From sequence record PV662128.1: 64,000 bases of DNA; one strand, 5' to 3'. The notes below the pieces were generated by a model that did not search any database, was not told where the DNA came from, and worked only from the letters and a program-made list of their open reading frames with translations. Below are positions 5,749 through 27,333 of the stretch, piece after piece (the first letter of the stretch is position 1; every line of letters starts with the position of its first letter). The translations under genes were made by a program, and so were the position numbers.

Positions 5749-6192
5749 ATGACTGAAAAAACTGTTTATAAATCCGGTTATTTTCCGATCAAAATCGAAG
5801 GTTGCTCTTCCGAGGAACTCGCCGATGTAAATAGTCAGTTCCTCACTCGACTTAAAGAACTTCGTAAAAACTATCTCCCTGGAGACAAGGAGATCGATAT
5901 TATCGATGATATTTTAAACGAAAAACCGATAACCGGTAACGATGTGTTCTTTTCTCTATCGTTTAAATATGATGACTGGGAAACCCTTTTTCCTATTGAA
6001 TCAATTCCCGGACCTTATGAAATTAAAATTATTAATTTGATCATCTTTCCATGGTCATGGATAAGAAGAGGTCATAAAGCCAGAAATGATGTTGATCGTG
6101 AAATTAAAAGATTGAAGAAACACTTCTTTCGTATTTATAAACACAATCTTCATAAGCGGTCTAAGTTTTATAAATTGAGGAAGATCAAATGA
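5749..6192 (+). CDS. Hypothetical protein
   Basis: Packed operon. Confidence 0.65.
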   Translation: MTEKTVYKSGYFPIKIEGCSSEELADVNSQFLTRLKELRKNYLPGDKEIDIIDDILNEKPITGNDVFFSLSFKYDDWETLFPIESIPGPYEIKIINLIIFPWSWIRRGHKARNDVDREIKRLKKHFFRIYKHNLHKRSKFYKLRKIK

Positions 6193-6509
6193 GATCTTTT
6201 ACACAACCCCTCATGATACATCGTTATCCTAGTGTCGATAAGTTCATAAGAGAACCTGGTAACAAAGCCCTGTTGTTATTGAGCCTCTTCAACTTAGAGA
6301 TCAAAATCAAGAACGCAGAGCTCAGGGCTGTCAGTAATCCCTTTCCAGGAGACACCTGGTTTACTGAGGAAGTCGGTAGCGATAAAATTCTCTTAGTAGT
6401 CCGAGTTAACCTCGGTACGGGGGAGCGCTACTACCAGCTTAATAATCTGGAATGGGTGGTTTGTACTAACTCTCTCACCGTGAGAGAACTCACTTTACTT
6501 TTAGGATAA
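6189..6509 (+). CDS. Hypothetical protein
   Basis: ATGA overlap with the upstream gene. Confidence 0.65.
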   Translation: MRSFTQPLMIHRYPSVDKFIREPGNKALLLLSLFNLEIKIKNAELRAVSNPFPGDTWFTEEVGSDKILLVVRVNLGTGERYYQLNNLEWVVCTNSLTVRELTLLLG

Positions 6510-6514
6510 TCGTT

Positions 6515-7021
6515 ATGAACGATATTAAAGTTACCGATCAAACAGAACAACGCGTCATTGACAAAGCACACGTTTATAACAAGCTCATCAACGAAACTGA
6601 TTTCGGAGATGGTAAAATCAAAACGCTTCACGAAGCTATCGTCCAACGCTTGCTCTGTGAAGCAGAGGAACTTGGTCTGAATATCGATCAAGAGCCGTTT
6701 GCTTCTCTGGGGAATCGCCAATTCACATTCTACCGCGTCCCGGAAGACGCTCATCTCATTCCATGGCATAACCATGTTTTCAACATCTGTCAAGTGGAAG
6801 ACAAACTTCAGGCACGTGACGCTAAAATCGTCGCGATGACACTGAACGGGTTTGACTACCAGATCGAGGTTGATTCGGAACGAGGAACTCGTACCTACTA
6901 CCTTAACGGTCAACGTATTTGTGATTGCACCGGTACTCCGACGTTACAAGATTTCAAAGATCTCTTCTCCGAAGAACGTCGTCGTTATCTCCAACAATTA
7001 GAGCAGACCCTTCGGGGTTAG
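6515..7021 (+). CDS. Hypothetical protein
   Basis: AGGA RBS, packed operon. Confidence 0.7.
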   Translation: MNDIKVTDQTEQRVIDKAHVYNKLINETDFGDGKIKTLHEAIVQRLLCEAEELGLNIDQEPFASLGNRQFTFYRVPEDAHLIPWHNHVFNICQVEDKLQARDAKIVAMTLNGFDYQIEVDSERGTRTYYLNGQRICDCTGTPTLQDFKDLFSEERRRYLQQLEQTLRG

Positions 7022-7029
7022 GAGTGAAC

Positions 7030-7521
7030 ATGGATAAGAAAGGTCAAGGTTCTCTTTACGGCAAAATTATTTGTACCGGTTTCAATATCGATAAAACTAC
7101 AGAAGAAGGGTTTGATCTCCTCAGTCTCGTATGGGGAAGAACACCCGGTGAACTTTCGAACTCTGAAATACCTGGGGTGTATTTAGAGCCATTCTCGCTC
7201 AAAGTAGAGAGAGTGGAGCTGAAGATGGCCGAAGAAATATTCGGTGCCGGATGTACGGTAAACTATTCGGGTATAGCGGAAGATCACAAAAGCCACGTTT
7301 ATCATGTCCGAGCGGAGACCTATGGAAGGGGACACTGTCACTTCGGATTAATTTATAATCACGAAACTGAGAAACTTCATTTCATTGAACGCAGTGATAT
7401 TGACATCAAAGAAAGTGAGGGGCTTCAACACGCAACTATTGAAAAACTCATACTTTCTTACGACGTGGTAAAATTCGAAGGCAGTCCGCAAGAATATATC
7501 GAGTTTATGAAAACCCGTTAA
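7030..7521 (+). CDS. Hypothetical protein (start moved to ATG 7030)
   Basis: AGGAG RBS before ATG 7030, in frame with the track ORF 6925..7521. Confidence 0.7.
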   Translation: MDKKGQGSLYGKIICTGFNIDKTTEEGFDLLSLVWGRTPGELSNSEIPGVYLEPFSLKVERVELKMAEEIFGAGCTVNYSGIAEDHKSHVYHVRAETYGRGHCHFGLIYNHETEKLHFIERSDIDIKESEGLQHATIEKLILSYDVVKFEGSPQEYIEFMKTR

Positions 7522-7528
7522 AACCAAC

Positions 7529-7563
7529 TATACTCTCCTCCCCGATAAGGGGAGGAGAGTATA
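7529..7563. terminator. Intrinsic terminator, TACTC-family palindrome
   Basis: tatactctcctcccc/ggggaggagagtata stem followed by a T tract. Confidence 0.8.
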
Positions 7564-7600
7564 ACTTATTTTTTTTTTCACATGCAGATAAACTAAAATC

Positions 7601-7615
7601 TATATTATTTCAGTA
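7601..7615 (+). promoter_or_regulatory. Promoter-like motif (CATGCAGATAA-N9-TATATTAT)
   Basis: The 11-mer catgcagataa lies 20 nt before the octamer here and at 28111. Confidence 0.5.
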
Positions 7616-7641
7616 TGAATACCTTAATTAAGGATTTAAAA

Positions 7642-8262
7642 ATGAAAATTGTTTTGGCTTTTGATATGGATGATACCTTAGTTAATACACGTAAAGAGAT
7701 TTATAAATTAGCTATTCTTCATTGCGTGACTAACGGTTTAAATGATCTCTTTCCTAAATTTGTAAATGCTCTTTGGTCAGGGGTAGCCGTTAGTGAGTTA
7801 AGCACTGAGATGAAAGAAATAATCGATAAAGAAGTTATTGCTAAAAGGGTGTATCTGGATTCGGCAGAGCGTTCATATTTTTGTAGTGATGAATTGGTGA
7901 GTCTTTTAAAGGATGTCAGGAACGCAGACAATGAGGTTAAAATTGTTATTTGTTCACATAGAGGAAATAACAAAGAAGCTTTCATGAGCACATATCGGTG
8001 GTTGGAAAATAAAGGACTTTTAGATTATTTCGATATGATCCACAGTATCGATAACCGGGTCCACAAAGATAAAATAAAATTTCTTAAAGCGACTTATCCT
8101 GATCACCGCATACTTTTAGTCGACGATAATCCTTATAGCGATGATAAAGAGAGTGTGATCATTTACGATAAGATTAATAAAAATAAGAAATACGAGGGAT
8201 TTGAAATTTGTAACAATCCTAATGATATTTTGCTCCGATTATTTGGATATAAAACAATTTAG
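7642..8262 (+). CDS. HAD-superfamily phosphatase/nucleotidase
   Basis: Motif I AFDMDDTL, motif II ICSHR, motif IV LLVDDNP; AAGGA RBS before ATG 7642. Confidence 0.8.
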   Translation: MKIVLAFDMDDTLVNTRKEIYKLAILHCVTNGLNDLFPKFVNALWSGVAVSELSTEMKEIIDKEVIAKRVYLDSAERSYFCSDELVSLLKDVRNADNEVKIVICSHRGNNKEAFMSTYRWLENKGLLDYFDMIHSIDNRVHKDKIKFLKATYPDHRILLVDDNPYSDDKESVIIYDKINKNKKYEGFEICNNPNDILLRLFGYKTI

Positions 8263-8276
8263 ATTAAAATCAAATA

Positions 8277-8309
8277 TATCTCTACTCTCCTCGTCGGAGA
8301 GTAGAGATA
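8277..8309. terminator. Bidirectional terminator
   Basis: tatctctactctcc/ggagagtagagata stem between convergent genes. Confidence 0.75.
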
Positions 8310-8324
8310 ATTATTTTTTTTTTC

Positions 8325-9815
8325 TTACCGGTAGGCGTCTTTAGTCAGCGTTCGTAAAACGATATACAACATCAGACTCGTTCTTAATGAACTTACCGTA
8401 ATACGGGTTTTTATCCCCGTCAGTTGTCTGACGATGTCGTCGCCTTCATCTCGCATCTTAAAGACGCTTTGGTTTTGACTACGACTACTGAGATACGCAC
8501 CACGCATTCGACGTAAGACTTCTCTCAGGTCGTTAGCTCGAATACTGTTTTCCGTTAAGTATTCGAACAAGTGAGTAGTAACCTCATCGACGAACTCTTT
8601 ATACTTCGTTCCTTTAGGCGAGTTATACTGATCGGGGAATACCCGGATAATTCGTTCCAGTTTATCCCTGGGTGAGTTGTCAATGGCTTCCGCAGCATAA
8701 CCTACCAACTCGTCCTTGTAGAACCCTGTAGACGAACTGAGGACGTTTTGGATGTAGTTTTTATACTGAGTAACGTTCTTCGTCACCTCTCGTACACTCA
8801 CTCCATCTTCCAGCGTGACCATCCCGCCGTCCAATCTGACGATATTCGTTTTCGATTTCACTTCATGGAAAACTTTGTTAATGTCGTTGATCACGCCTCT
8901 GAGTCGATCCTGGATATCACCGACCATGTAAATGATTTTCTTGTCATCGTCCATGGTAGTAAACGTTTTATAGTGAATCCCAGTTTTGGGATCTAAAATA
9001 AACTCAGCCCTGGCTCGGATTAACGCCATCCAACTACCGTAGCGTTTGATGTCATAACGCATGCTTAAACGGTTATAGGTTTCCATAGCGATCTCTTTCT
9101 TCGCCAGGTACTTATAATCGTTTGCCATAATACTTGTCAAACATTTGTAATGATACATCGCTAAGATGTTAACCATCGCATTGTGTTTAACACGATCATG
9201 GAGATCGCTATGAAACGTCCGGTATAACAAATAAACAATGCTCAGGTTGAACACGTCACCGGTAACTTTCCAGGTCGCATTGATCAGTTTACAGGCGTGG
9301 AGGTTTTCTCGTAATTCTTCTTCGTCGACATCGAAGATTTCAGCAAACCAGCGGTTTCTGTCTTCTGATGTGAAAACGATTCGGTGGATACCCAAATAGG
9401 GATTACCAAAGAATTCCACATACTGTTCGTTCTTGGTGGTAAATCCAATGACATACCGAGTAAGTCTGTCGGCCCAACGGTTATCGATTTCTAAATCGTG
9501 TCCGAATGCGTTAAACACACCGAGTATCGCGTGATCGGTATTGAAATTGTAATTGGGCAGCAGAGCTTCAAAACCAGATATCCCAAATGTTTTTTGAAGG
9601 AGTTTCTCGATTCCCTTGTCGGGTGTAATCTCCTCGAACATTTTGACTTCGGGTTCGGCGTCATACATCCCGTCTTCGACCAACATCGGATCCCCGCTTA
9701 AAATCCCGCTAGGATCAAATACGGGCAATCCAGAAAGTTTATCGAACCATTGGCGGTCGTCGTTCTGAAAATAGCTCTCAGAGCCATTGAGACGATCTGC
9801 GTACTGATTAAACAT
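8325..9815 (-). CDS. Conserved phiKZ-like protein, probably virion-associated
   Basis: Long ORF; the segment GFTTKNEQYVEFFGNPYLGIHRIVF resembles a conserved chimallivirus core protein (recalled, not searched). Confidence 0.6.
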   Translation of the reverse strand: MFNQYADRLNGSESYFQNDDRQWFDKLSGLPVFDPSGILSGDPMLVEDGMYDAEPEVKMFEEITPDKGIEKLLQKTFGISGFEALLPNYNFNTDHAILGVFNAFGHDLEIDNRWADRLTRYVIGFTTKNEQYVEFFGNPYLGIHRIVFTSEDRNRWFAEIFDVDEEELRENLHACKLINATWKVTGDVFNLSIVYLLYRTFHSDLHDRVKHNAMVNILAMYHYKCLTSIMANDYKYLAKKEIAMETYNRLSMRYDIKRYGSWMALIRARAEFILDPKTGIHYKTFTTMDDDKKIIYMVGDIQDRLRGVINDINKVFHEVKSKTNIVRLDGGMVTLEDGVSVREVTKNVTQYKNYIQNVLSSSTGFYKDELVGYAAEAIDNSPRDKLERIIRVFPDQYNSPKGTKYKEFVDEVTTHLFEYLTENSIRANDLREVLRRMRGAYLSSRSQNQSVFKMRDEGDDIVRQLTGIKTRITVSSLRTSLMLYIVLRTLTKDAYR

Positions 9816-22247: not shown

Positions 22248-22331
22248 ATAAACAACACAAATGTTTATCTGTTTTGATCAAACTAAATAACATCCCCTTT
22301 ATAAAAAGCTAATAGCTATTAGGAGTTAAGA

Positions 22332-24344
22332 ATGTCCGACAATCAAAATGGCAACAACTGGGAACAAACCGTCCTGAACACCGCTGCTGGTAAAGGAGAG
22401 CCGATCGTCTCTGCTTCTGCCGAGAATTTCGGTTCTCAGCTGCTCGGTCTGCTCGGCCAGGCTTCTCTTCTGGGTTCTTCCAAGAACGTACCGGAAGTAG
22501 AAGAAACCGCAACTCTGATCAAGAAACGCGTAACCGATCTGAAAAACGGTACTCCGGGCGAAACCCAGAAGAAGATCCTGCCGGAAGTGAACATCATCAC
22601 CAAACCGATCATCTCTGCGCTGCCGGGCATCGTGCTCTCCCTGCACATGAGCAACAACCCTGCGGTATACGTCATGCCGGTGCTGTTCTCTAACCGTCAC
22701 CTGACCAATACCCTGGAAGAGATCCAGATCGACAACGGCGCCAACCAACAGCGCAAAATGTCCATGCCGTTTACCCCGGATTCCTACGCTCGTGCTGATC
22801 TGTTCGAACAGATCAAAATGCACTACAAAGCGATGCTCCAGGATAAAGGTGTGAGCGAATGCGTGATCATCAACGTGATGGTTATCGACCTGGAACAGAT
22901 CGTCGGCGACGATATCCTGAATCAGGGCAAATCGCCGCTGCTGCGTGATGAAATCATGCGTAGCTGGGAACAGGGTCTGATGGTACAGATCGCGAAAATC
23001 GCAGCCAACCAGCCGAAAGCGTCTCTGCCTTCTCCGTTCTCTGCGACCGGTGGCAAAGCCTATGGTCAGCACGGTAATGCGATTGCTCGCGTTGAACCGA
23101 TCCGCGGTCAGTACGTTAACGAAGGCCTGTTGTCTCCGGCGAACCTGACCATCCGCATGCAAACTGCTAACCACAACGGTTATCAGGGTAATGCGGAACA
23201 GTCCCGTGAAATCGTCAACACCTACGCGACCGTTAGCCTGATGGGTTCTCCGATCCAGCAGTTCAACCCGCAGCTGACCGGTAACATCCCGCAGCCGTAC
23301 CTGCAGACCCCGAACGGCCGTCCTCAGGGCTACACCCCGCTGCAGCCGGTGGTTATTATGAACCACGCTAAAGCTGGCGAAGTGCTGGGCGACGCAACGG
23401 GTCTGTCGACCTACTTCATGGGTCTGTTCTCTCTGATGGCGACCAACAGCAACTACCTGTTCGCTGAAGGTCTGCGTTCTAAGAACGTAGGTTCTCGTGG
23501 CTCCCTGCCGGATATGGAACATCGTATCCGTCAAATGGAAATGGGCTTGCCGCCGCGCACTAAGGGTACTGAGATGACCGACGCTAAACTGTCGGATATC
23601 GATTTCACCACTAACTGGCTCCGTAACAACGTCGGTCCTAAAGCGGTATTCGCTGCAGACCTGATTCAGTTCGGCCCGGATGCGGCAATCTCCAACTTCC
23701 TGTTCAACCTCACCTCCGGTGCGAAAGACTACAGCAAATGCGTGAAAACCGTTATTGCTATCGTCGACTCCATCTCTGGTGATGCGAAAGCCATGTCTGC
23801 GGTTATCGCAGAAAACCAGGCCAACAACAACGCCAACGGCGGATGGGTTCCAGGTAAACCGGTTCTGCACGTTTCTAACGCGCTGATCCCGGTCGGTACT
23901 GCTGTACTGGATAACAAACGCATCGCGCTCGGCGAAGTGGACGAGATGTTCCTGTCCAAGCACTACAAAGATCAGATCACCCCGATGAACCAGTACCTGG
24001 AAAACATGTACGGGTCTAACCCGAACGTTCCGGAAAAACTGCGTCGCTATAACCTGCTCATCCAGCTGTCCACCATCTTCTCTGAAGGTGTAAACCTGTT
24101 CGGCTTCGCTCGTCGTTGCTACTGGGATCCGCTGTTCATGGATGCGTTCACCAAAGCGATGAACACCATCGGTTCTCTGCAGGTTACTGGCTCCATGGGT
24201 CAGTTCGCTGCTAACGTTCAGGTCTTCGCTCCTGGTCAGCAGTATGTTTCTCAGGCGACTGCTGGTAACTCCGGTGGTGTGGTTCTGGGTAATGGCATGA
24301 TGCTGGGTGCAGGTGGCGGTCTGGTGTTTGGTCCGTCCTACTAA
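22332..24344 (+). CDS. chmA: Chimallin, major nuclear shell protein
   Basis: 670 aa, extreme highly-expressed codon bias, directly upstream of nvRNAP beta-prime as in phiKZ gp54/gp55, Gly-rich C-tail. Assigned mainly by synteny and size. Confidence 0.8.
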   Translation: MSDNQNGNNWEQTVLNTAAGKGEPIVSASAENFGSQLLGLLGQASLLGSSKNVPEVEETATLIKKRVTDLKNGTPGETQKKILPEVNIITKPIISALPGIVLSLHMSNNPAVYVMPVLFSNRHLTNTLEEIQIDNGANQQRKMSMPFTPDSYARADLFEQIKMHYKAMLQDKGVSECVIINVMVIDLEQIVGDDILNQGKSPLLRDEIMRSWEQGLMVQIAKIAANQPKASLPSPFSATGGKAYGQHGNAIARVEPIRGQYVNEGLLSPANLTIRMQTANHNGYQGNAEQSREIVNTYATVSLMGSPIQQFNPQLTGNIPQPYLQTPNGRPQGYTPLQPVVIMNHAKAGEVLGDATGLSTYFMGLFSLMATNSNYLFAEGLRSKNVGSRGSLPDMEHRIRQMEMGLPPRTKGTEMTDAKLSDIDFTTNWLRNNVGPKAVFAADLIQFGPDAAISNFLFNLTSGAKDYSKCVKTVIAIVDSISGDAKAMSAVIAENQANNNANGGWVPGKPVLHVSNALIPVGTAVLDNKRIALGEVDEMFLSKHYKDQITPMNQYLENMYGSNPNVPEKLRRYNLLIQLSTIFSEGVNLFGFARRCYWDPLFMDAFTKAMNTIGSLQVTGSMGQFAANVQVFAPGQQYVSQATAGNSGGVVLGNGMMLGAGGGLVFGPSY

Positions 24345-24368
24345 GAGTTCGGCTGTAAGCTCACTAAA

Positions 24369-24397
24369 GGAGGAGGCGGAAGCCTCCTCCCTTTTTT
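24369..24397 (+). terminator. Intrinsic terminator after chmA
   Basis: ggaggaggc-ggaa-gcctcctcc plus T tract. Confidence 0.85.
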
Positions 24398-24415
24398 ATG
24401 CATTTCATTTTTTGA

Positions 24416-25834
24416 GTGAACGGAGACGTTATGGATCAGTACGGCGATCGTATTATTGATGCATTAACAGCGCCTGAATTTTCATCGTTGCAACCAGAGG
24501 CTCAGTTTAAAACTTACGCCAAACAATACGGCGGCGATCTTTCTGACGATAAACGTTTTTATGAGCCGCTATATCCCGACTTCACTGACTATAACCGTTT
24601 GCATGATACCGCTAAGGTTGATCCGGTTTACCTGAACGATTTCGATTTTTGTTTGGAAGAAGACCGAGAACGAATCGCATCCTTAATTCGTATGGACTTC
24701 AACACCGACACATTCGAAACCGTGGCGAGATGTAGTTGTGGTCACTTGAAGGGCAACTATTTGTTGGGTCAGAAGAGATCGTGCCCCATATGTCAATCCC
24801 TTGTAGAGAAAGTCGTGGAGACTTCCTTAGATACTAAGGTGTGGGTCAGGGTTCCAGAAGGCGTGGTTGCATTTATCAGCCCGGCTTATTACAAAACCTT
24901 CTTATCGAAGATCGCGACCAATTCTCCAAAGATTGAGATCGTGACTTGGCTCATTGATCCGTCTTATCGTCGGGGTAGTCGAGCACAACATACTGAGTCG
25001 GGTCGTCGCATGTTGGCTGAACTCGATAAACTCGGAATAGTCCCTGGGCTTAATAGCTTTATACTGAACGCGGACAAATTCATGGAACACTTCCTTGTTG
25101 GTGAAGGAAGAGGCGCTGTGAGCATGAAACCAGCTGACGGTAAAAAGCATTTGGATAAGTATTACGAATATCGTCATCTTATCTTCCCGCGCTATTTGTC
25201 GGTACCCAATAAACTCGCTACCATCATCGAGCAAGATGGTAAAGATAAGTACGTTTCTTCAACCCAATTGAAAACCTCGGCAATCTACCAATCTATTGCG
25301 GATACGAGAGATTCTACTGAGTTTTATAAATGTACGATTAAGGATCTTAAAGAGAACGCTGATATCGTCGGGAAGGCGATAGTTCGATTAGGTAAACAGA
25401 ACTCTGATAACTATAAGAGTCAGCTGTTTGCTAAATCGAGCCTGATACGTAAACACGTCATCGCGGGATCGTTATCTTTATCAGGTCGTGGTGTTATCAC
25501 GTCAACGACCGGATTGCATGATGCTGGTGTTGCTAAGATACCTTGGATCATGGCAGTAGCTATGCTGAAGAAACACATCCTGGGATATCTTTACCGTTTA
25601 GGGTACAGTCCCCTGAGAGCTGAAAGTGTAATCAGTACAGCTGCGCACCAGGTCGTCCCGGTTATCGATCAATTCTTTACCAAGCACGAAAAGCAAAAAG
25701 ACATTGTCTGCATTTTAGGAAGAAACCCATCAATTCAGTACCTGTCAGCAAAAGCCTTCTTTATGTCGATCAACCGAGATTTAGAAGACGAATCGATAAA
25801 CTTACCGATACTCTCAGTTAAAACCTTCAATGCT
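24416..25834 (+). CDS. nvRNAP beta-prime N-terminal subunit (phiKZ gp55-like), exon 1
   Basis: Zn finger CSCG..CPIC, RKHVIAG, GRNPS; the frame reaches FNA of the NADFDGD motif and then runs into intron sequence. Confidence 0.88.
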
Positions 25835-26199
25835 AAACATATTGGCCCAGTAGACGCGAAAGCTCTGCTGCGTACTCTCTCTAATTGCTGGAAACTCCTA
25901 AAGCTCGTTCACCTCGTATAGAGGGGTCGAAAGACAGAAACAACGAACGAGATATCTCACGCTAACCAATAATGCTAAAAGATAAATAATGGGTTACCTA
26001 GCAGCGAACCCTACCTCGGTAGGAGACGTTCAACGACTAGAGCTGAAATGCTCGTAGGATCCTAGTGTGGATCCGAAATGGGAGAGGACCTAAGTTTGAC
26101 AGTAGTCAAATATGGTTAAGATATAGTCTGTGCCCTCAGGAAATCTGAGGGAGGGTGTCTCAGCACACCTGCTCCATATGGAACGGAGTGGACAATCAG
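25835..26199 (+). ncRNA. Group I intron 1 (IA2-like), no ORF
   Basis: 5' exon ends in U; P AAUUGCUGGAAA 25883-25894; Q UAGCAG; R GUUCAACGACUAG 26028-26040; P7.1 and P7.2 hairpins; S AAGAUAUAGUCU 26118-26129; P9 hairpins; terminal G 26199. Confidence 0.92.
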
Positions 26200-26211
26200 G
26201 ATTTTGACGGT
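26200..26211 (+). CDS. nvRNAP beta-prime micro-exon 2 (12 nt, DFDG)
   Basis: gat ttt gac ggt supplies exactly the missing residues of NA-DFDG-D. Confidence 0.88.
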
Positions 26212-26522
26212 AAACGTATTGCCGCCTAGCTTAGTAATGAGTTAGTGAATAAGTGCGGAATGAAGCGTAGAAGCTGAAATGCCGATGCGAACCGAAGGAC
26301 TAAGAGTAACGTCTTAGCCAGGGGCAGAGCGTAGGAGATGAAACCATTTATGGAATATAATTCTCCCAAGAGGCCGCACCACGATGAGTATTGATCTCAT
26401 CCGCTCTATTAGAGCGCCTATCGTGAACGAGGGTGAAAACGTACGCCACACAATCCGAATAGAAAGGGTTGAGCTAAGAGATAAAAAACTCTTAGGCGAA
26501 TAGATTTTTATTCGTAATGATG
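26212..26522 (+). ncRNA. Group I intron 2 (IA-like with variant P7), no ORF
   Basis: P1 GACGGU/GCCGCC with U.G at the splice site; P10 GUAUU/GAUAC; P3 GUGCGG 26253-26258 / CCGCAC 26374-26379; P7 GCGUA 26329-26333 / UACGC 26442-26446; terminal G 26522. Confidence 0.85.
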
Positions 26523-26711
26523 GATACCATGTACTGTTATGTATTGAGTGATTTGAAAGGTAAGGCCAAAGCGTATGGGTCGTTCGGTCATCAGTCCATG
26601 CTTGATGAAAACGAACCATTTACAATAAGTCGATTTGCTGATCAAACTTCAACGAATTTGATGAACCTCAACAACATGATGAGAGGAACACCAATCAATG
26701 AATGCGGCTGA
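26523..26711 (+). CDS. nvRNAP beta-prime exon 3
   Basis: Begins D-T-M-Y, completing NADFDGD; continues KAKAYGSFGH...TNLMNLN; spliced product 539 aa from the 24416 start. Confidence 0.85.
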   Translation, partial: DTMYCYVLSDLKGKAKAYGSFGHQSMLDENEPFTISRFADQTSTNLMNLNNMMRGTPINECG

Positions 26712-27333
26712 CGCGTTTAGCTTTAGTTGTGCCGGCGCTATTGACGAAGGTCGAATGCGTCAGTATGCCGGCTATGTCCAAATGAATTTTGATAACGTGA
26801 AAGGCATGGGAGGTTGGCTGGCGAAAGAAGCAGAAAAAACGTTAGACCGATTTTCTAACTTCATGAATTCCAGGGCGTGGGAGTTATCCAAAATCCTAAC
26901 GGGGAATGGCGATGGTGAATACGTAGGTCGATTCGACATCGGTTATTTAGGTTCCCTCAACGCCCAACAGCAAGCCCAGGGATTCATGCGGGATTACATC
27001 ATGGCTAACCCATTGGTTATGCAGATGTATCTGGATGGAGGATTGGAAGGCTACGGTGGTGAGTTCTCCCCGTTCTGTAATACCGTTGGTAAGAACAACG
27101 TTTTCTATCGTAACGCCACCCATGGTATAGTACAAACTGAAACTAAAGACGACGTTCAGAAAACCTGGTTTAGTCACTTTGGTGATGTGCCGGGTACAGG
27201 AATGTCCTTTAGGGAACAAGCAGACATCATGAGAACTTGGAAAGCGACCAATCACCTGATAGGTTCTCAACTCTTTGATATGACCTCACCATCGAATAAA
27301 AAGATGAATGAGGATAACGAAGAGGAAACATAA
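26698..27333 (+). CDS. Conserved chimallivirus core protein downstream of beta-prime
   Basis: 211-aa ORF overlapping the end of exon 3; synteny. Confidence 0.7.
   Translation: MNAADAFSFSCAGAIDEGRMRQYAGYVQMNFDNVKGMGGWLAKEAEKTLDRFSNFMNSRAWELSKILTGNGDGEYVGRFDIGYLGSLNAQQQAQGFMRDYIMANPLVMQMYLDGGLEGYGGEFSPFCNTVGKNNVFYRNATHGIVQTETKDDVQKTWFSHFGDVPGTGMSFREQADIMRTWKATNHLIGSQLFDMTSPSNKKMNEDNEEET

Follow-up and report, generated by a model that had tools for sequence, protein, structure and literature searches.

The window considered here, a stretch of 64,000 nt, matches Raoultella phage VB_ZK_P1 (PV662128.1) with 100% identity and in the same coordinates over the region of interest, where an RNA polymerase (RNAP) gene is interrupted twice within the codons of its catalytic motif, NADFDGD. 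On the plus strand, exon 1 (24431-25834) ends with ...KTFNA (acc ttc aat gct, with ttc aat gct at 25826-25834), and is followed by intron 1 (25835-26199, 365 nt), by a 12-nt micro-exon (GATTTTGACGGT, 26200-26211, gat ttt gac ggt or Asp-Phe-Asp-Gly), by intron 2 (26212-26522, 311 nt), and by exon 3 (26523-26711; DTMYCYVLSDLKGK...ECG), which starts with gat acc atg tac (DTM) and closes with a TGA at 26709-26711. Both 5' splice sites are preceded by U, and the last base of both introns is G (26199 and 26522). The splice boundaries proposed in an initial annotation of this DNA were all confirmed. The three aspartates of NADFDGD hold the catalytic Mg in multisubunit RNAPs, and the micro-exon codes for two of them, so that in the window the motif exists only once both introns are removed. 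The predicted product has 539 aa from a GTG at 24416, or 534 aa from an ATG at 24431, the latter being the GenBank start, and the equivalent ATG of the relative Miami has an annotated ribosome-binding site.

Boundaries and identity of the split gene

The boundaries are set by relatives that lack the introns. Seven related records were retrieved by megablast of window 24400-26750, and in the near-identical phages KPN8, YC1 and BUCTxx100, whose gene is uninterrupted, the corresponding stretch measures 1675 nt versus 2351 nt in the window, a shortfall of 676 nt that equals the two introns (365 + 311). In the Klebsiella phage KPN8, the intronless gene aligns in two blocks (window 24400-25834 and 26523-26750), the pairwise break points being 25834|25835 and 26522|26523, and the 12 KPN8 nucleotides left unaligned between them (GACTTCGATGGC) are the counterpart of the micro-exon. 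At the DNA level, exon 1 is 95.7% identical to the KPN8 gene, up to exactly 25834. The KPN8 coding sequence (CDS) is a single uninterrupted run of 539 codons, whose product reads ...SVKTFNADFDGDTMYCYVLSDLK... and ...KTFNADFDGDTMYCYV... and contains FNADFDGDTM, the very motif that excision of both introns had been claimed to restore. By tblastn of the KPN8 protein against the window, residues 1-468 map to exon 1 and residues 473-534 to exon 3 (100% identical at the protein level), while the four residues left out, DFDG, are encoded at 26200. The 11-mer GATTTTGACGG is the sole DFDG-coding one in the 64-kb window, with 0.35 expected, so that the count alone is not significant; the weight of the match comes from its position exactly between two ribozyme cores.

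Public annotation reflects this interruption. A truncated gene and a 64-aa orphan had been anticipated as the output of annotation pipelines, and GenBank holds exactly these two entries, both as 'hypothetical protein': VBZKP1_28 (24431..25921), which runs on into intron 1, and VBZKP1_29 (26517..26711). As a side observation, exon 3 (26523-26708) is matched by PHROG 34135 (62 positions, 'unknown function', E = 2.4e-23), which appears to be a family built from orphan 3' exons of split gp55 homologues.

In database searches the pieces were queried apart rather than as a joined spliced protein, and the natural intronless orthologue of KPN8, 98.7% identical to the window exons, served as the yardstick. 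This intact orthologue matches PDB 7ogp_A (E = 4e-36), the chain of the phiKZ non-virion RNA polymerase (nvRNAP) named 'PHIKZ055, PHIKZ056.1', as well as Pfam RNA_pol_Rpb1_2; bacterial beta' is matched with an E of about 1e-5, and in that alignment FNADFDGD falls on the catalytic loop of beta'. PHROG 2987 ('RNA polymerase beta subunit') matches exon 1 (E = 9.9e-123, profile positions 2-417) and exon 3 (positions 422-475), and exactly four positions (418-421) are absent between the pieces. In the window, the split gene is the next gene after that of the nuclear-shell protein chimallin, and the order in phiKZ is likewise gp54 then gp55. The structural and PHROG matches uphold the earlier assignment of the gene to RNAP and identify it, by homology, as the gp55 counterpart of phiKZ, the N-terminal beta' piece of the nvRNAP; it occupies the only gp55-like place in the VB_ZK_P1 genome. 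In phiKZ-type phages, infection is followed by synthesis of the nvRNAP, which transcribes the middle and late genes (PMC7598289), and the polymerase of VB_ZK_P1 would, by homology, do likewise.

The chimallin open reading frame (ORF) lies at 22332-24344 (PHROG 4795, E = 5.8e-100, in agreement with the annotation of relatives), and its presence marks VB_ZK_P1 as a nucleus-forming jumbo phage. Two side observations concern this neighbourhood. On the minus strand, a 545-aa ORF (22326-23963) lies antisense to the chimallin gene; rather than a real gene, it is most likely a side effect of the codon usage of chimallin, which is strongly biased and host-like and, by eye, unlike that of the neighbouring genes. 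Between the chimallin and polymerase genes, a GC-rich hairpin with a T run behind it (ggaggaggcggaagcctcctccc tttttt, 24357-24398) occupies the position equivalent to that of a terminator annotated in Miami.

Two unrelated group I introns

The two introns are unrelated in sequence. Intron 1 is recognized by the Rfam model RF00028, which covers 25825-26151 over its full length (model 1-253) with 63.8 bits (gathering score 50, E = 7.5e-14), and the alignment displays the P, Q, R and S elements, with R at 26028-26039 (GUUCAACGACUA) and S at 26118-26128 (AAGAUAUAGUC). P1 is formed by 25832-25836 (GCU|AA) and 25842-25846 (UUGGC), the splice site being gcT|aaa, and the same helix (GCU|AA/UUGGC) is returned by minimum free energy (MFE) prediction (z-score -4.2). 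Between P7 and P3', a 37-nt insert following GUUCAACGACUA forms two hairpins (GAGC..GCUC and GGAUCC..GGAUCC) that correspond to P7.1/P7.2 (26040-26074). These helices are the mark of group I subgroup IA. The U that ends exon 1 is paired with G in P1, the terminal base is G and precise removal restores the frame; intron 1 is thus identified from its sequence features as a group I intron of IA type, complete and with P7.1/P7.2 as first described. Many jumbo phages, among them SPN3US-like, EL-like, Vibrio and Aeromonas ones, have related introns in their RNAP genes. Within the 64-kb window, no further copy of either intron and no other group I core was found, and neither intron 1 nor intron 2 contains a credible ORF, hence no homing endonuclease such as a mobile intron would carry.

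The Infernal search with group I models that the initial annotation had proposed recovered intron 1, and gave no match to intron 2 with RF00028 or any other Rfam model, even at E <= 10. Homologues of intron 2 were nevertheless detected by distant blastn in the Aeromonas jumbo phages ACP1, CF8, AhC3_1 and PS1 (L005-L008), and Rfam misses these as well. They lie in the other beta'-like gene (PHROG 2986), at DFDG|D (...GGDFDG|DQL...), and the occurrence at the same motif position in two paralogous polymerase genes suggests that the intron 2 family moves between paralogous target sites.

The group I nature of intron 2 can be argued from covariation alone. An alignment of six sequences (the window and five homologues) was evaluated over 12 helices and 67 pairs; 95.1% of the cells are paired and 26 of the 67 pairs have changed on both sides, versus 3-6 two-sided pairs when the structure is slid by 1-3 columns, and none of 500 shuffles reaches the observed value. 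The supported layout comprises P1, P2, P3, P4, P5, P6, P7, P7.1, P7.2, P8, P9 and P9.1, with two-sided changes in P2, P4, P5, P6, P7, P7.1, P7.2, P8, P9 and P9.1. P3 (GUGCGG/CCGCAC, 26253-26258/26374-26379) is invariant, hence uninformative, and P7 (GCGUA/UACGC, 26329-26333/26442-26446) shows one compensatory change, from G-C to A-U, in AhC3_1. P3 and P7 cross each other in a pseudoknot topology, and such a crossing is found in every group I core. The RNAalifold consensus paired GUGCG with CGUAC in place of P3/P7, because pseudoknots cannot be drawn by this program, and these pairs were replaced by hand.

The remaining helices were placed at 26208-26213/26219-26224 for P1 (CGGUAA/UUGCCG, with the splice site ggT|aaa and U26211 in a wobble pair with G26221), 26266-26269/26286-26289 for P4, 26297-26305/26312-26319 for P6, 26334-26338/26362-26366 for P7.1, about 26380-26435 for an expanded P8, 26452-26456/26466-26470 for P9, 26474-26480/26489-26495 for P9.1, and 26496-26502/26509-26515 for P9.2. 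The P10 guide GUAUU (26216..26220, plus strand), read from the sequence, pairs with GAUAC at the start of exon 3 (26523-26527); in Miami the same places read GUGUU and GACAC, a compensatory change in which position 3 of exon 3 is T in the window and C in Miami. By eye, the J6/7-P7 segment (CAGAGCGUAG) looks like a canonical R element and the J8/7-P7' segment (AAAACGUACGCC) like a canonical S element. Intron 2 therefore combines the U.G wobble, the terminal G, a P10 and precise boundaries (the latter from KPN8), with an MFE z-score of -3.8, and it is called IA-like because helices lie between P7 and P3'.

This intron belongs to a large family. The 16-mer CAGGGGCAGAGCRTAG from its J6/7-P7 region matches at least 111 viral contigs in IMG/VR, and a six-sequence nhmmer profile gives near-full-length matches in nearly all of these contigs (loci L018-L128, E from 1e-39 to 1e-9), so that the family profile matches more than 100 viral loci. 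A distant member (L079, 1786-1999) is matched both by this profile and by RF00028 (49.3 bits), and thus ties the family to canonical group I introns. Since covariation and family size point the other way, the failure of Rfam is not taken as evidence against an intron; the same data place intron 2 among genuine group I introns, in a common family missed by Rfam, and covariation by itself sustains the original description of the second insert as a group I intron. As this large family escapes the standard Rfam model, intron surveys relying on RF00028 undercount phage introns.

An observation made along the way concerns one of these contigs, L052 (IMGVR_UViG_3300043009_000020), whose minus strand holds four group I introns in a row at about 7070-8140, two of Rfam type and two belonging to the intron 2 family. 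The array is bordered by a GIY-YIG-like ORF (8157-9194) on one side and on the other by an ORF (5931-7055) taken by eye as terminase-like, and two of the introns flank a 15-nt exon (GGAAGAAGACACGGT); stacked introns in phage genes may therefore enclose micro-exons more often than published cases suggest.

Independent insertions and possible traces of homing

The distribution of introns among relatives indicates how the two came to lie 12 nt apart. Intron 1 is absent from KPN8, YC1, BUCTxx100 and Miami. In Miami, exon 1 continues through ...AAT GCT GAC TTC GAC GGT and is then interrupted by a single 1415-nt intron at G|D, of IA type (RF00028, 42.9 bits), which carries an ORF for a 328-aa HNH/NUMOD endonuclease. 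Conversely, the single intron of EL lies at A|D and the exon after it opens with GATTTTGATGGTGATTCC, so that the 12 nt are contiguous with that exon, while the close relative of EL, HHBS47_1, has an intron at G|D instead; G|D is the only occupied site in Miami, Aphrodite1, FishSpeaker and HHBS47_1. This pattern shows that the two insertions are independent of each other. Because each site is occupied alone elsewhere, the 12 nt are ordinary coding sequence that becomes isolated only when both sites are filled. The pair is not a twintron, since the cores stand side by side, 12 coding nucleotides apart, and each is found alone in relatives.

Across gp55 homologues, five insertion sites fall within the NADFDGD codons, each of them between two codons of which the first ends in U. 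N|A is used in phiKZ (L129, 4169-5541), where the HNH gene gp56 lies in the P1 loop; A|D in the window, phiKp_32 and EL; D|F in PDCC-1, AVP1, CF8, PS1 and ACP1; G|D in the window, phiKp_32, Miami, Vibrio 5 TSL-2019, Aphrodite1, VP4B (as L134), FishSpeaker, HHBS47_1, PS1 and ACP1; and D|Q in an IMG/VR jumbo phage locus (L173, about 5830-7340). PS1 and ACP1 thus form a second double-intron lineage in the same gene. In these Aeromonas phages (L017, 4887-6521, and L176, 2082-2943, respectively), the order is ...AAT GCY GAT, intron, a 9-nt micro-exon (TTCGACGGT, Phe-Asp-Gly), intron, GAT AAC ATG, with the first intron at D|F rather than A|D; in PS1 both introns are detected by Rfam (42.4 and 79.6 bits), and the public records of the two phages annotate fragments only. 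Double occupancy arose a second time, independently, in this lineage. Among 45 IMG/VR loci encoding gp55 relatives, most of which are intronless in the motif, no further double-intron allele was found. The arrangement of the window itself recurs in a second isolate, phiKp_32, with intron identities of 98-99.7%. Its intron 1 is the same (99.7%), with an extra 1.07 kb in the P1 loop that encodes a 339-aa HNH endonuclease ORF.

The exons bear two different signatures. Exon 1 differs from KPN8 at 62 nucleotides and at 4 amino acids only, and the micro-exon and exon 3 show zero amino-acid differences, a pattern indicative of strong purifying selection. Silent differences, however, are unevenly spread: all four wobble positions of the micro-exon differ from KPN8, and exon 3 has 11 silent differences, of which 10 fall in its first 42 nt and 8 in its first 30. 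The micro-exon and the first 45 nt of exon 3 together hold 14 silent differences in 57 nt, versus 63 in 1548 nt elsewhere in the gene (odds ratio 7.7, Fisher p = 1.5e-7). The tract (26523..26567, plus strand) adjoins the intron sites and is common to the window, phiKp_32 and Miami, though the G|D intron cores of the window and Miami differ. It may thus record co-conversion of exon flanks during endonuclease-driven homing, after which the endonuclease-bearing intron would have been lost or replaced.

Probable splicing, rival explanations and known systems

Taken together, it is highly probable that two endonuclease-less group I introns invaded the nvRNAP beta'-N gene at A|D and G|D, 12 nt apart, and that both are excised with the micro-exon kept. 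The boundaries, the independence of the insertions, the group I architecture of both introns and the purifying selection on the exons are established here; from these we infer that both introns splice in infected cells, by themselves or helped, and that the phage depends on this splicing, its middle and late transcription requiring both events. Each intron would act as an autonomous ribozyme carrying out the usual two transesterifications. The P1 of intron 1 would take the end of exon 1 (GCU), with the start of the micro-exon as its 3' exon and likely P10 partner (about 3 bp), whereas intron 2 would build its P1 from the 3'-terminal CGGU of the micro-exon, whose U makes the U.G wobble at the splice site, plus its own first two bases, and its P10 would engage GAUAC, with which exon 3 opens. 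As the demands of the two introns on the micro-exon do not overlap, excision in either order should work. The predicted junctions are TTCAATGCT-GATTTTGACGGT-GATACCATG (GCT-GATTTTGACGGT-GATACC); the mature mRNA (...FNA-DFDG-DTM...) would encode a polymerase with all three Mg-binding aspartates, and a tryptic peptide of the spliced beta', TFNADFDGDTMYCYVLSDLK, would span both junctions. Ribosome help in intron folding has been described for T4. Nucleus-forming phages separate transcription from translation (PMC12908238), and the introns of VB_ZK_P1 would for this reason have to fold without ribosomes clearing the upstream exon.

Several points weigh against this interpretation, in addition to the silence of Rfam on intron 2. 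The P8 of intron 2 has a window-specific insertion of about 46 nt to which no definite fold could be assigned; the P1 of intron 1 has just three exon base pairs and its P10 about 3 bp; a long-read transcriptome of phiKZ did not report spliced reads for predicted introns (PMC10914365); and some phage group I introns splice in vivo only (PMC11878797). Could one or both inserts then be introns that are not autonomous, requiring a protein cofactor from the host or the phage, or the joint action of the adjacent RNAs? The escape of intron 2 from the general group I model, its lineage-specific P8 expansion, the short P1 and P10 of intron 1 and the several phage introns spliced in vivo and not in vitro (PMC11878797) all speak for such dependence, which is nonetheless improbable given that the core helices of intron 2 are all kept by compensatory changes, that its family is widespread in unrelated viral contigs, which argues against dependence on a specific partner, and that relatives of each intron are found alone elsewhere. 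Alternative splicing is another possibility of low probability, in which some transcripts would skip the micro-exon and encode FNA-DTM without two of the catalytic aspartates, as waste, a regulator or a poison subunit. Skipping a 12-nt exon would stay in frame because both sites lie between codons, and since the micro-exon and exon 3 both begin with GAU, the short guide of intron 1 separates them poorly: UAUU, as read from the sequence, pairs with GAUA (exon 3) at least as well as with GAUU (micro-exon). Documented cases of exon skipping come from Twort orf142 (23-nt exon) and from Coxiella 23S rRNA (34 nt) (PMC10136302), and also from phage SIOphi (PMC11878797). The proposed route through a single large ribozyme involves similar introns, however, whereas those of the window are unrelated, and skipping would in any case supplement autonomous excision rather than replace it.

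Two further readings are far less credible. A frame interrupted twice and annotated as hypothetical proteins is what would be expected of a pseudogene broken by degenerate mobile elements, but death of the gene in VB_ZK_P1 is very unlikely: a viable virus was isolated, strong purifying selection acts on the exons, the genome has no second copy, phiKp_32 has the same arrangement at 98-99.7% intron identity, and the model phage cannot do without the enzyme for middle and late transcription. The least probable explanation of all is that the 688-nt insert is one composite intron, whether a twintron or a single large intron, with an internal DFDG match by chance. The chance expectation of 0.35 DFDG-coding 11-mers per window leaves room for such a coincidence, but loss of the full 688 nt would take DFDG out of an invariant motif, the 12 nt fall exactly between two complete cores, the halves occur singly in relatives with the 12 nt joined to one exon or the other, and PS1 and ACP1 repeat the design with a 9-nt exon.

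Beyond the excision of two independent introns, a functional role for their stacking can be imagined, though it is rather unlikely. The 21 nt of NADFDGD might be a contested landing strip, with at least five between-codon sites, each after a codon that can have U as its third base, and stacking might provide immunity against several endonucleases during co-infection (compare the PhiPA3 gp210 interference), or allow skipping to yield an in-frame dead beta' that tunes or poisons the polymerase. The clustering of five sites at the active site fits the view of intron endonucleases as weapons between co-infecting jumbo phages. Whatever the origin of the arrangement, the records of VB_ZK_P1, phiKp_32, Miami, PS1, ACP1 and CF8, at the least, list two 'hypothetical proteins' in place of an essential polymerase subunit. 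The 12-nt exon (9 nt in PS1/ACP1) would have to be the 3' exon for the first ribozyme and the P1 substrate for the second, and its codons specify invariant catalytic residues; splice-site choice and exon skipping by tandem group I introns could be studied here in a compact natural setting.

Some components of this arrangement are already known, namely the intron of phiKZ gene 55, mobile introns in chimallivirus RNAP genes, and tandem group I introns around short exons. In the literature surveyed, coverage of which is incomplete, no description was found of stacked introns in an RNAP active site, nor of a 12- or 9-nt exon in a phage gene. The closest relative is phiKZ, where gp55, the HNH gene gp56 and gp56.1 confirm the earlier statement that single introns occur in the gp55 gene of phiKZ-like phages. 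As in the window, the orthologous nvRNAP beta'-N gene of phiKZ lies directly downstream of the nuclear-shell gene and has an IA-type group I intron inside the NADFDGD codons (RF00028, 75.6 bits), and the 7ogp_A chain reads straight through the motif; unlike the window, phiKZ has one intron, located at N|A (3 nt upstream of the first site of the window), with an HNH gene inside and no micro-exon. In another chimallivirus, PhiPA3, a mobile group I intron with an HNH endonuclease (gp210) interrupts a virion RNAP gene (PMC11620839). Comparable HNH genes are found inside the phiKp_32 and Miami introns, but the PhiPA3 intron lies in a different RNAP gene (an RpoB homologue per PMC11620839), and the introns of the window have lost an endonuclease gene or never had one.

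Short exons between neighbouring introns have been reported in several other settings. In Twort orf142 (Landthaler & Shub 1999, as summarized in PMC10136302), introns 2 and 3 flank a 23-nt exon, and both splicing and exon skipping were shown experimentally. Like the window, this phage protein gene has tandem group I introns and a very short internal exon to be kept, but the exon is 23 nt rather than 12 nt (9 nt in PS1/ACP1), the Twort introns are close relatives whereas those of the window are unrelated, and the gene is structural and does not encode an enzyme active site; splicing in the window, for its part, is predicted from sequence. Two group I introns also surround a 34-nt exon in the 23S rRNA of Coxiella burnetii (PMC10136302), and a 'small exon' is described within phiNIT1's gene for ribonucleotide reductase, along with exon skipping in SIOphi (PMC11878797). 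The Coxiella and phiNIT1 cases share with the window two group I introns of different subgroups stacked closely in conserved sequence, but they concern an rRNA gene and a nucleotide-metabolism gene, with internal exons that are longer or of unstated length. Finally, mini-exons of under about four codons are routine between mitochondrial introns (PMC10352661), with the same exon size class and the same annotation failure (conserved residues missing from gene models), but in organelle genomes and with protein-assisted splicing, whereas the gene of the window belongs to a virulent phage. Among these systems, the VB_ZK_P1 case is notable for the extreme size of its exon, its position in a catalytic motif, and a second intron that is invisible to Rfam.

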